Source: Macrostomum lignano (Eukaryota). Taken from it: DNA of 45,492 bases. Below, one piece after another: positions 17,601 through 20,600 of the stretch. Every line of letters starts with the position of its first letter. Position 1 is the stretch's first letter. Below the pieces are notes generated by a model. That model saw only the letters and a list, made by a program, of their open reading frames with translations. It was not told the origin of the DNA and made no database searches. A program made the position numbers and the translations under genes. The DNA is taken from the NCBI GenBank assembly GCA_002269645.1, contig NIVC01001929.1, forward strand, positions 1 to 45,492. Direction: 5' to 3'.

Positions 17601-20600
17601 AGAAGAACAGAAACAGCTGCGTGTCGTCCATGTGGATCATCTGGCCTGCTCGGGATTCGGGATCACGAGGCGGCGGGCGGGTGCAAGCTCCCTAATTAAT
17701 TTCGCCGCAAGCCCCAGAGAAAGTCATTATCCGCTTTGAATCCCCCTGGGTTGAGGCAATTTTCCAGCAGCGCATTCGCCAGATTTTTACTTTGTCGAAC
17801 TAATTTCGAGAGCCCGCCGTCCTGGCAGGGATAATCATCGGCTATTTGAATGCGGAGTCTCGCGCTCGAAGGGATTGCAAAGCTCGCTAATCGCTTAATT
17901 AGGGAGCGGAGGAGTTGAATTAGCGATGAGCCGTCTCGTTCGAGTTTTTCAAAGAGGCCAAACTTGGAGTGCATCGAACTTGTCTGCGCCGAAGGCGGAG
18001 TTCGAACTGCCGAAGGTAGATAGGATTTGAGGAGGACTGGCTGCCGGTTCAATGGCAGAAAGTTTTCCCTTGGGCAAATGAATATAACGAAGTTAGGTTC
18101 CAATGATCAGCTGGAAGTCATTGGAACTAGATCTCAATGACCAGCTGGAAGTCATTGAAACTAGATCTCAATGACCAGCTGGAAGTCATTGGAACTAGAT
18201 CTCAATGAGCAGCTGGAAGTCATTGGAACTAGATCTCAACGACCAGCTGGAAGTCATTGGAACTAGATCTCAATGAACAGCTGGAAGTCATTGGAACTAG
18301 ATCTCAATGAGCAGCTGGAAGTCATTGGAACTAGATCTCAACGACCAGCTGGAAGTCATTGGAACTAGATCTCAATGAACAGCTGGAAATCATTGGAACT
18401 AGATCTCAATGACCAGCTGGAAGTCATTAGAACTAGATCTCAATGACCAGCTGGAAGTCATTGGAACTAGATCTCAACGACCAGCTGGAAGTCATTGGAA
18501 CTAGATCTCAATGAACAGCTGGAAATCATTGGAACTAGATCTCAATGACCAGCTGGAAGTCATTAGAACTAGATCTCAATGACCAGCTGGAAGTCATTGG
18601 AACTATATCTCAATGAGCAGCTGGAAGTCATTGGAACTAGATCTCAATGACCAGCTGGAAATCATTGGAACTAGATCTCAATGACCAGCTGGAAGTCATT
18701 GGAACTAGATCTCAATGACCAGCTGGAAATCATTGGAACTATATCTCAATGAGCAGCTGGAAGTCATTGGAACTATGTCTAAATGAGCAGCTGGAAGTCA
18801 TTGGAACTAGATCTCAATGAGCAGCTGGAAGTCATTAGAACCAGATGTCGTTGAAAAGCGGAAGACTACCGAAACTGATCTCAGGGGCCAACATGAAGGC
18901 ACTCAACAACAATCGGCAATCTGCTTACCCTTGAGCAGCAGAGAGGTCTCAGGCGAGGTCTCCTCCGGCCCCCGGCGCAGCAGCAGGGTGAAGGCGCTGT
19001 TCAAAAACCGCCGAATGAAGCTGGCAGTGAAGGCCACTGGCGGATTGACGAGGTCGCAGACGTCTGTGAGCCGGACGGGTTCGCTAGGCGAGCGAAGCGC
19101 GTGGCAGACCGTCTGGATGCCGACGCCACTCTGGCGCACCAGCAGCTGCTCGTCGAACACGATGTGGTAGGGGAAGTGTCTGATGAAGGAGCGGACAGTG
19201 ATGTGGCTGTGGGCCGGACACCAGGGTTGGAAGTAGTCCTCCAGGCTGACCGCCAGCGAGCCGGTGGAGCTGAAGGTAATCAGCAGCTTCGCGTGGGTTC
19301 GATAGCGACTCTCCGCTGGAAAGTCGGTCTCGATGTTGAGCACCTTCAGTTGGATTTCGGTGCCGAAAATCTCCTTGGCGACGGTGCTGAGCATGCCTGA
19401 TGGATCGGGGTCGGGGCTGCGGCCTAAGGCTTGGAAATTGGCCACGTCACCCATGTCAATAACGCTGCATATTGAAAAAAAACTTGGCAACATTTAAAAG
19501 TGAGCGCCAAAGCTCAAAGGAGACGCTGATATCTCAGAATAGGTATAGCTGTCTTTCAAAACGGATGCTTTTTTGCTTTAAACATCTTTTTCCTAAAGGA
19601 ATTAACAATATCGACTGTTCAAAGTCAAAAGCTACATGTAGTTTATTCCTTTCTTTATTGCCTCCCCAGCGGGGGGGGGGGCGGGTCGCTAGTCCAATTA
19701 CTAAAGCTGGCACCTTCGTCTGGTGGACCGGCCGAGTTTGTTGCGCATCTCAACGATTCTAAACTAGCAAAATCCAAAACACCTGTCGAAAAGATTTTAA
19801 TTCACAGATAACTAAATAGCAGTCCATGAAGAGCCACAATGACACTCACCCTTGATCCAGCTAGTTAGGCCCGATCTGGCGCTGTAATAGTGCAGTATAA
19901 ACTCCCCAGAGTCATCGTAGTTGCAGCTGAAAATGAGCATAGCTATACGCGTAAAGTACAAAAGACTGTTGCTTTCAAAATTTTTGTTTTTTTGTTATAA
20001 AGAAGTGAAATTCTTTACACCTTGCTCTGCCTTGGCTAGCGGCACTTAATTTAATCTACGAGTTCACGGCAGGAAATTCACTCAAATGCATCGCCTTCGT
20101 CAAGAGGCTATAATGAGATGAGTCATGCTTCAGTAAATTTTAGCTCCTAAAGAGGTACCAATTCTGAATTTGATAATTCTTCAGAAGAGCAGCAATTCGC
20201 AGAACAGCATGGCAAATTCGTGAAACAACTTTATAATGAGGATCATCTTAAGTTTTGAGGAAGAAACTTGTCGACTCCTACATTCTCTTCTGTCGCTAAT
20301 TTAATCGGCTAACAGATTGTTGGTTTGACCTTGAAAATTTGAGAAGTTTTCCTTCATTCTTAAGCATACCACTTATCCATGGCGTGATTAATAACACACG
20401 GTTTTATGCTGGACAATCTCAAAACCCAAAACACCCAACAGTATACCTGAGCTACCCAACAGTATACCTGAGCTACCCAATAGTATACCTGAGCTACCCA
20501 ACAGTATACCTGAGCTACCCAACAGTATACCTGAGCTACCCAATAGTATACCTGAGCTACCCAACAGTATACCTGAGCTACCCAACAGTATACCTGAGCT

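Follow-up and report, generated by a model that had tools for sequence, protein, structure and literature searches.

A predicted beta-2-type heme-sensor guanylate cyclase of the flatworm Macrostomum lignano with tryptophan at the distal-pocket column of beta-1 Ile145

The residue in the column of Ile145 of the soluble guanylate cyclase (sGC) beta-1 H-NOX domain is the textbook switch for predicting nitric oxide (NO) versus O2 sensing. Both beta-1 and beta-2 have Ile at this column and an Ile-to-Tyr change altered ligand binding of beta-1, and Tt H-NOX binds O2 through Trp9, Asn74 and Tyr140 (PMC1435932). The rule is known to be incomplete since beta-2 of the mouse participates in O2 sensing despite its Ile: sensing of low O2 in the mouse that is independent of nitric oxide synthase (NOS) requires Gucy1b2, and rat beta-2 is active without a partner (PMC5196021). 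Here we describe a gene on the minus strand of a 45,492-nucleotide stretch of Macrostomum lignano DNA (assembly GCA_002269645.1, contig NIVC01001929.1, positions 1 to 45,492; hereafter the window), which is predicted to encode an intact beta-2-type heme-sensor cyclase with Trp at this column.

The closest described systems are the vertebrate sGC beta-2 (GUCY1B2/Gucy1b2) and the invertebrate beta-2-like proteins, which share with the window protein the domain order, a catalytic set complete in one chain, the CaaX box and the heme-anchoring His105, YxSxR and Pro118. However, column 145 of beta-2 proteins is Ile, in rare cases Leu, and column 78 is Cys, whereas the window gene encodes Trp145 and Phe78, and also Phe9, Ile146 and Met149. 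NO-selective beta-1 (human 6JT0, Manduca 6PAS chain B) aligns with the window protein over the whole length of the H-NOX domain and has the same heme-anchoring residues, but it lacks the first metal Asp, needs an alpha subunit and has Ile145 and Cys78, in contrast to the full catalytic set and the Trp and Phe found here.

The atypical O2-binding sGCs (Gyc-88E/89D, GCY-31/33, GCY-35/36) are comparable in their capacity, predicted for the window protein, to function as homodimers or with no classical alpha partner, and in a distal column that is not Ile; the nematode cyclases come, like the window protein, from an animal without NOS. In the atypical cyclases and Tt H-NOX a Tyr is present at 145 or 142, usually together with Gln149, whereas the window protein has Trp145, Leu142 and Met149. 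Neither column therefore holds the distal Tyr typical of O2-binding sGC and H-NOX proteins, and the window sequence groups with beta-2 and not with the atypical O2-binding clade. A first-pass annotation of the window, made from its letters alone, had placed Tyr at column 145 in O2-binding H-NOX proteins and atypical sGCs including GCY-35; this is right for Tt H-NOX and the Gyc-88E type, the basal O2-sensitive sGC clade having Tyr at this column, but in the nematode-specific GCY-35 clade the Tyr lies three residues upstream (PMC1435932). A choanoflagellate study predicts selectivity from whether a distal Tyr is present, and by this rule the window protein would be called NO-selective by default. 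Bacterial NO-sensing H-NOX proteins (e.g. Nostoc Alr2278) have a nonpolar, often aromatic residue over the heme and the same His and YxSxR, but they are stand-alone domains with no cyclase fusion, and Trp is found in none of the 43 sampled.

The Trp is encoded by a TGG codon at 19857..19859 (minus strand, as are all features of the gene), in the column of beta-1 Ile145 and Tt H-NOX Tyr140. It lies in a 77-nucleotide exon (exon 4, 19850..19926) with canonical AG/GT borders, flanked on the minus strand by ...gctcattttcag upstream and gtgagt downstream, which also encodes the YxSxR motif (Tyr 19889-19887, Ser 19883-19881, Arg 19877-19875). The interval 19850-19926, to which the first-pass annotation had assigned the feature, is exactly this one exon with the quoted peptide in frame, and the Trp codon is read directly in the frame of the exon, six residues past the Arg of YxSxR as had been claimed, and three residues ahead of a conserved Gly. 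The label of exon 5 given earlier has to be changed, since the Trp exon is the fourth in the cis model and becomes the fifth only when the count takes in a leader or an exon upstream.

The H-NOX register was set by phmmer against all PDB sequences. The H-NOX domain matches human sGC beta-1 (5MNW, and 6JT0 chain B) with an E-value of about 1e-33, and the stretch from LHYYS to GTEI runs gap-free against human beta-1, with 'gltsWikg' over 'glqdIvig', which places the Trp opposite Ile145. In other PDB alignments the partner of the Trp is Ile in Manduca beta-1 and Met in Nostoc H-NOX. Another copy of this gene in M. lignano (A0A1I8H1P0) carries the Trp exon verbatim and the Trp is also present in three M. 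lignano paralog clusters. Sequencing error as the source of the Trp was rejected because the residue is common to these independent copies and paralogs.

The column was surveyed in roughly 226 H-NOX sequences, of which about 183 are mostly from animals and 43 are prokaryotic. Distant rows were gathered with HMMER, by which the 60-residue exon 3 was run exhaustively against 1.84 billion representatives, and flatworms are represented by one genus (Macrostomum) and one monogenean. Among the best 120 full-length matches, column 145 is Ile in 107 and Leu in 7, and Trp occurs in the Macrostomum paralogs only (SWIKG, SWIKG and GWVIG). Over all the rows covering the column, Ile is found in 148, Tyr in 13, Leu in 10, Trp in 5, Phe in 3 and Met in 2, the five Trp rows being confined to Macrostomum and Cichlidogyrus, while the 43 prokaryotic loci, taken from a scan of GTDB species genomes, have F in 25, L in 10, M in 8 and W in none. 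Alignment of H-NOX domains, which had been proposed as the check on how often Trp145 occurs, therefore finds it rare and in this set restricted to flatworms. The earlier emphasis on a residue that is neither Ile nor Tyr stands only in part: F, L and M are common in the family column, and it is Trp itself that is unusual. The Trp is flatworm-specific in the sampled sequences and, as judged from the gene copies, real, conserved and lineage-specific.

A word-indexed homolog search with the H-NOX domain alone gave no match. Literature searches found no H-NOX paper on engineered Trp at the site (I145W, Y140W, M144W, F142W) and, among the papers listed, none that pairs H-NOX with flatworm terms; the supplement of a Cryptocotyle paper lists three sGC transcripts. 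Two proteins from the representative search (P0124 and P0125) have a tandem H-NOX pair with Tyr at column 145 in one domain and Phe in the other.

The heme-anchoring set of the window protein is intact. The His of NLDSLH (codon 20719-20717) aligns to His105 in NLDALH of beta-1, YxSxR is present as HYYSAR (beta-1 Y135/S137/R139) and the Pro is present in VPPSF (P118). These residues are unchanged in the window copy, in every paralog with the Trp (W-type) and in the monogenean gene. The first-pass annotation had read a retained proximal His and a Phe in place of beta-1 Cys78 (codon 20800-20798), and the alignment pairs the residues accordingly. Column 78 is Cys in 230 of 268 rows, and in these rows Phe78 is seen in the Macrostomum W-type proteins and in no other lineage. 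Met149 is present in the Macrostomum W-type proteins as well, Leu9 of beta-1 is replaced by Phe in the window gene, and its protein combines Trp145 with Ile146, Met149 and Leu142. Both of the Tt H-NOX O2-binding network positions Trp9 and Asn74 are Phe in the window protein, and Gln149, the companion of Tyr in the sampled Tyr-type cyclases, is Met. Columns 78, 149 and 9 border the distal pocket in H-NOX structures, and this pocket is thus predicted to be unusually aromatic and bulky in the Macrostomum W-type protein.

The gene model consists of nine exons that were joined by hand into an open frame of 643 amino acids, with AG/GT boundaries at all nine exons and the domain order H-NOX, HNOBA, coiled coil and cyclase. 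Pfam matches are found for HNOB (PF07700; residues 8-171, 145.8 bits, the curated cutoff being 25.5, over profile positions 1-162 of 163), HNOBA (residues 219-408, 128.8 bits) and Guanylate_cyc (residues 414-598, 228.6 bits). Exon 1 (21950..22047) has the in-window ATG and the Phe at the Leu9 position (codon 22005-22003), exon 2 (21324..21424) encodes the N-terminal part of H-NOX, and exon 3 (20670..20853) carries the proximal His, the Phe at the Cys78 position and the conserved Pro. Exon 4 is followed by exon 5 (18929..19396; Met149 codon 19394-19392), which completes H-NOX and begins the HNOBA/PAS-like domain and has a 68-nucleotide in-frame upstream extension (19397..19464, acceptor AG at 19466-19465), and by exon 6 (17325..17645) with the end of HNOBA and the coiled-coil signalling helix. 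The cyclase domain is divided between exon 7 (16534..16829; metal Asp codons 16797-16795 and 16665-16663, guanine Glu 16677-16675), which encodes its first half, exon 8 (15899..16053; Cys 15987-15985, Asn 15966-15964, Arg 15954-15952), which encodes its second half, and exon 9 (14601..14832), which completes the domain and then encodes a tail rich in Gln and, ahead of the stop, the CaaX box CTAL (Cys 14615-14613). With the HNOB, HNOBA and cyclase domains, the His, YxSxR and Pro and the catalytic set all present, the gene appears to encode an intact heme-sensor cyclase, in line with the gas sensor that the first-pass annotation had proposed.

Numbering of the protein depends on its start. The Trp is residue 151 from the in-window ATG at 22047, an alternative start which adds MTQYSFQ, and residue 145 if the start is Met-Tyr-Gly. 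Exon 1 holds a strong internal acceptor, tcatttcag/TACGGA at 22031/22030 on the minus strand, and the M. lignano spliced leader has an ATG at its end (PMC8629364). Trans-splicing at the 22030 acceptor would make Met-Tyr-Gly, the canonical H-NOX start, and would give exactly the numbering of the first-pass annotation, with His106 and Trp145. Several introns of the gene are largely tandem arrays, located at 20433-20668, 20920-21175, 21473-21862 and 18101-18846, with 11 copies of a 21-bp unit that abut the exon 3 donor, (TCAA)64, 39 copies of a 10-bp unit and 22 of a 34-bp unit. A perfect trinucleotide microsatellite (16863-17317; AGT on the plus strand, which reads TAC on that of the gene; about 152 copies, 100% identity) starts 8 bases past the exon 6 donor, inside an intron of the gene.

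Among structures, the cyclase domain is closest in sequence to the homodimeric receptor cyclase GC-A; the beta-1 and alpha subunits score lower. The catalytic motifs of the window protein are identical to those of GC-A residue for residue, and hence a single chain carries the two metal Asp, the Glu and Cys for guanine and also the Asn and Arg, which agrees with what the first-pass annotation had read. The first metal Asp motif is FSDIV and not FSGIV, which separates the protein from the obligate-heterodimer beta-1 type. The predicted cyclase thus has the catalytic set needed by a homodimeric enzyme. The C-terminus is STCTAL, with CTAL as the CaaX box, and a Cys at position -4 is also present in 83 of the 120 closest homologs, by which the last exon is supported. 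These sequences suggest that prenylation is conserved in this cyclase family, and the window cyclase is probably prenylated. The CaaX feature is also seen in beta-2-like homologs from molluscs to mammals and in an Ile-type M. lignano paralog (CHLL).

Full-length search confirmed M. lignano as the source, since UniProt A0A1I8GHI0 is identical over every exon that it shares with the gene model. The next-best matches are the three M. lignano paralog clusters at 55-71% identity, followed by proteins of nemerteans, molluscs, annelids, brachiopods and vertebrates, which are 39-49% identical to it over more than 90% of the length. Of the best 120 full-length matches, those ranked 5 to 120 have, with few exceptions, the name 'guanylate cyclase soluble subunit beta-2(-like)'. 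Together with the architecture, the catalytic set and the CaaX box, these family matches place the gene in the beta-2 (GUCY1B2-like) group. The beta-2 trait of Ile or Leu at 145 and Cys at 78 is replaced by Trp and Phe in the window gene, which is hence a variant member of the family, the residues at 145 and 78 being a conserved trait and not a formal definition. A more distant beta-2-like cyclase of M. lignano, A0A267G826, has Ile145, Ala78, the full catalytic set and the CaaX box CHLL. As predicted from their sequences, W-type and Ile-type sensors therefore stand side by side in the M. lignano genome.

Public protein models of the gene and its copies (A0A1I8GHI0, A0A1I8H1P0 and A0A1I8HJT2) are without exons 1-2. 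A0A1I8GHI0 starts at the Met of exon 3, stops ahead of the last exon and swaps the Trp exon for the 68-nucleotide extension of exon 5, by which YxSxR and the Trp are lost; the 22-residue peptide encoded by the extension has no homolog. The A0A1I8H1P0 model includes the Trp exon and then runs into the intron, and A0A1I8HJT2 retains repeat-rich intron sequence. We rejected the exon-skipping UniProt form as the true product because it deletes YxSxR and inserts a peptide without homolog, while models of the sister copy and the paralogs include the exon. Comparison of the sequences thus supports the model with exon 4 over the skipped form. Since the public model omits the exon with YxSxR and the Trp, database surveys would miss this feature.

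The fifth Trp row of the survey is a protein fragment of Cichlidogyrus casuarinus, a monogenean flatworm. Its locus (contig JBJKFK010001543.1, 9683-11673) reads ...LYYNSQRKGLWPWITG followed by gt, and the next exon opens with MLGRIATEIF. The signature W145-I146-x-G-M149 is common to Macrostomum and Cichlidogyrus, and its residues are rare in the survey (Ile146 in 4 rows, Met149 in 7); the N-terminal GHIH-C motif is also common to both genes. The Cichlidogyrus gene has neither Phe78 nor Phe9, and in BLAST it is no nearer to Macrostomum than to molluscs. Common descent of the two Trp is likely but not proven, as it draws only on the shared W-I-x-G-M and GHIH-C motifs, overall similarity deciding for neither side; the Cichlidogyrus Trp may instead have been gained by convergence. 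The Trp has been kept across paralogs that are only 55% identical, and in the monogenean. The counterpart of Macrostomum exons 2-4 is one continuous exon in Cichlidogyrus, with an intron after W-I-T-G at the same position, and the deposited protein is a 117-residue fragment that reads into this intron. A word-indexed homolog search with the fragment returned only the fragment itself.

The firm part of the result is an intact gene for a beta-2-type cyclase, predicted to sense through heme, whose ligand-contact column has a Trp that is specific to flatworms in the sampled sequences. We favour, with a probability of roughly 0.6 for the account as a whole, the reading that this Trp would act mainly as a steric lid. 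The heme would bind a diatomic gas, and the signal would pass via HNOBA and the coiled coil to a two-site homodimeric cyclase that makes cyclic GMP. The Trp would sit over the distal heme face and, in Macrostomum, would be joined by Phe78, Phe9 and Met149 in a crowded aromatic pocket. As a bulky lid touching the ligand, it would retune on and off rates and selectivity by steric or hydrophobic gating. The first-pass annotation had named steric gating and an indole NH donor as two examples of an unusual ligand discrimination. That ligand handling differs at all from that of the Ile-type paralog seems rather likely; that steric tuning by the Trp is the cause is a narrower proposal, read from the position of the residue, for which we would give slightly less than even odds. 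The steric reading is favoured because of the bulky aromatic co-replacements, the frequent Phe in the bacterial column and the missing polar O2 network of Tt H-NOX. The NOS oxygenase domain has been reported as absent from all of 33 flatworm genomes and 49 transcriptomes, M. lignano included, while sGCs are kept (PMC10728431). With NOS reported absent in flatworms, the physiological ligand would more likely come from the environment (O2, exogenous NO or CO) than be NO made by the animal itself.

Several points weigh against this reading. The effect ascribed to the Trp is deduced from its place in the alignment. Phe is the commonest residue in the bacterial H-NOX column (25 of 43), and the Trp may be a larger version of an ordinary donor-free pocket. 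Trp is slow to change once fixed, so that its conservation by itself says little for a special role. Flatworms are sampled thinly, and the putative homology of the two Trp lineages is based on few shared residues.

It is also possible, but unlikely, that the indole NH of the Trp donates a hydrogen bond to heme-bound O2 and so provides a third solution beside Tyr145 (Gyc-88E) and Tyr142 (GCY-35), by which the W-type flatworm cyclases would be genuine sensors of O2. Chemical precedent for an indole NH donor exists in truncated hemoglobins, in which Trp G8 hydrogen-bonds bound O2. Among the new groups in the pocket the Trp alone is polar-capable, the position of the hydrogen-bond donor is known to be movable, and flatworms are reported to be without NOS, as is C. 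elegans, whose sGCs sense O2. The beta-2 family has moreover been tied to NOS-independent O2 sensing in the mouse (PMC5196021). However, the Phe at both Tt network positions and Met149 in place of the Gln149 seen in the sampled Tyr-type cyclases weigh against it. Geometric reasoning, which was not computed, would also put the indole NH nearer to the backbone than the Tyr OH, so that the ring carbons may reach the ligand first. The Ile145Tyr change alone reportedly gave no O2 binding in full-length beta-1.

Equally to be considered is a neutral or compensatory packing change, in which the Trp arose with C78F, L9F and I149M in a beta-2 sensor that has no distal donor, would keep its selectivity and would respond to exogenous NO or CO. 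Several pocket residues have indeed changed together in Macrostomum, Phe, Leu and Met all fill the column in other H-NOX proteins, and the published no-distal-Tyr rule would class the protein as NO-selective. We nevertheless consider this doubtful, because Trp occurs nowhere outside flatworms among the surveyed sequences and is kept both in the 55%-identical paralogs and in a monogenean without F78 and F9, so that it is not simply compensating for those changes; the Ile-type paralog in the same genome also suggests a division of labour. Lastly, a dead sensor, either with a filled pocket that takes up no heme or gas or with a main mRNA that skips the exon and yields a heme-less constitutive cyclase or comes from a decaying polyploid copy, is very improbable: A0A1I8GHI0 does use the 68-nucleotide extension with its good acceptor in place of the Trp exon, and M. 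lignano is described in one study (PMC10468722) as a hidden polyploid with many gene copies, but the window copy, all W-type paralogs and the monogenean gene have the His, YxSxR and Pro unaltered, the nine exons are open with canonical splice sites, and all relatives have the Trp exon, which other Macrostomum models include as well, whereas the replacement peptide has no homolog.

The window as a whole is eukaryotic, intron-rich and full of tandem repeats, and ARAGORN found no tRNA in it. Outside the cyclase gene there is a 1.9-kb (ATAG)n microsatellite at 25385-27262 (about 470 copies, 97% identity), and more large arrays are located at 9308-10181, 11248-12334, 32660-33663 and 36718-37547. 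Upstream of the cyclase gene and on the opposite strand, open frames of a rhodopsin-family G protein-coupled receptor are present at 31733-32605 and probably at 28649-29056 (plus strand); the larger frame matches 7tm_1 with E = 1.6e-7 and the other has no Pfam match. A coding-looking frame at 25007-25366 (minus strand), charged and coiled-coil-like, ends in a stop and has a sub-threshold Pfam match only; it is probably the last exon of a neighbouring upstream gene. An interspersed repeat of about 300 bp is present in three copies with 76-90% identity, at 24395-24695 (plus), 12726-13025 (minus) and 43668-43924 (minus), and is probably an element like a short interspersed element (SINE) or a miniature inverted-repeat transposable element (MITE).

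A wider possibility, which we regard as improbable on present sequences, is that W-type beta-2 cyclases form a flatworm-wide clade of sensors for O2 (or another non-NO ligand), in which the distal Trp NH, in place of a Tyr, stabilises the ligand. If true, the H-NOX fold would have come to bind O2 by a third and chemically independent route, which arose in a phylum that lost NOS, with the W-type working beside an Ile-type paralog of different ligand preference. The natural Trp variant, with its deep conservation, an Ile-type paralog and its occurrence in animals that reportedly produce no NO themselves, provides a ready-made test of the role of the distal residue.

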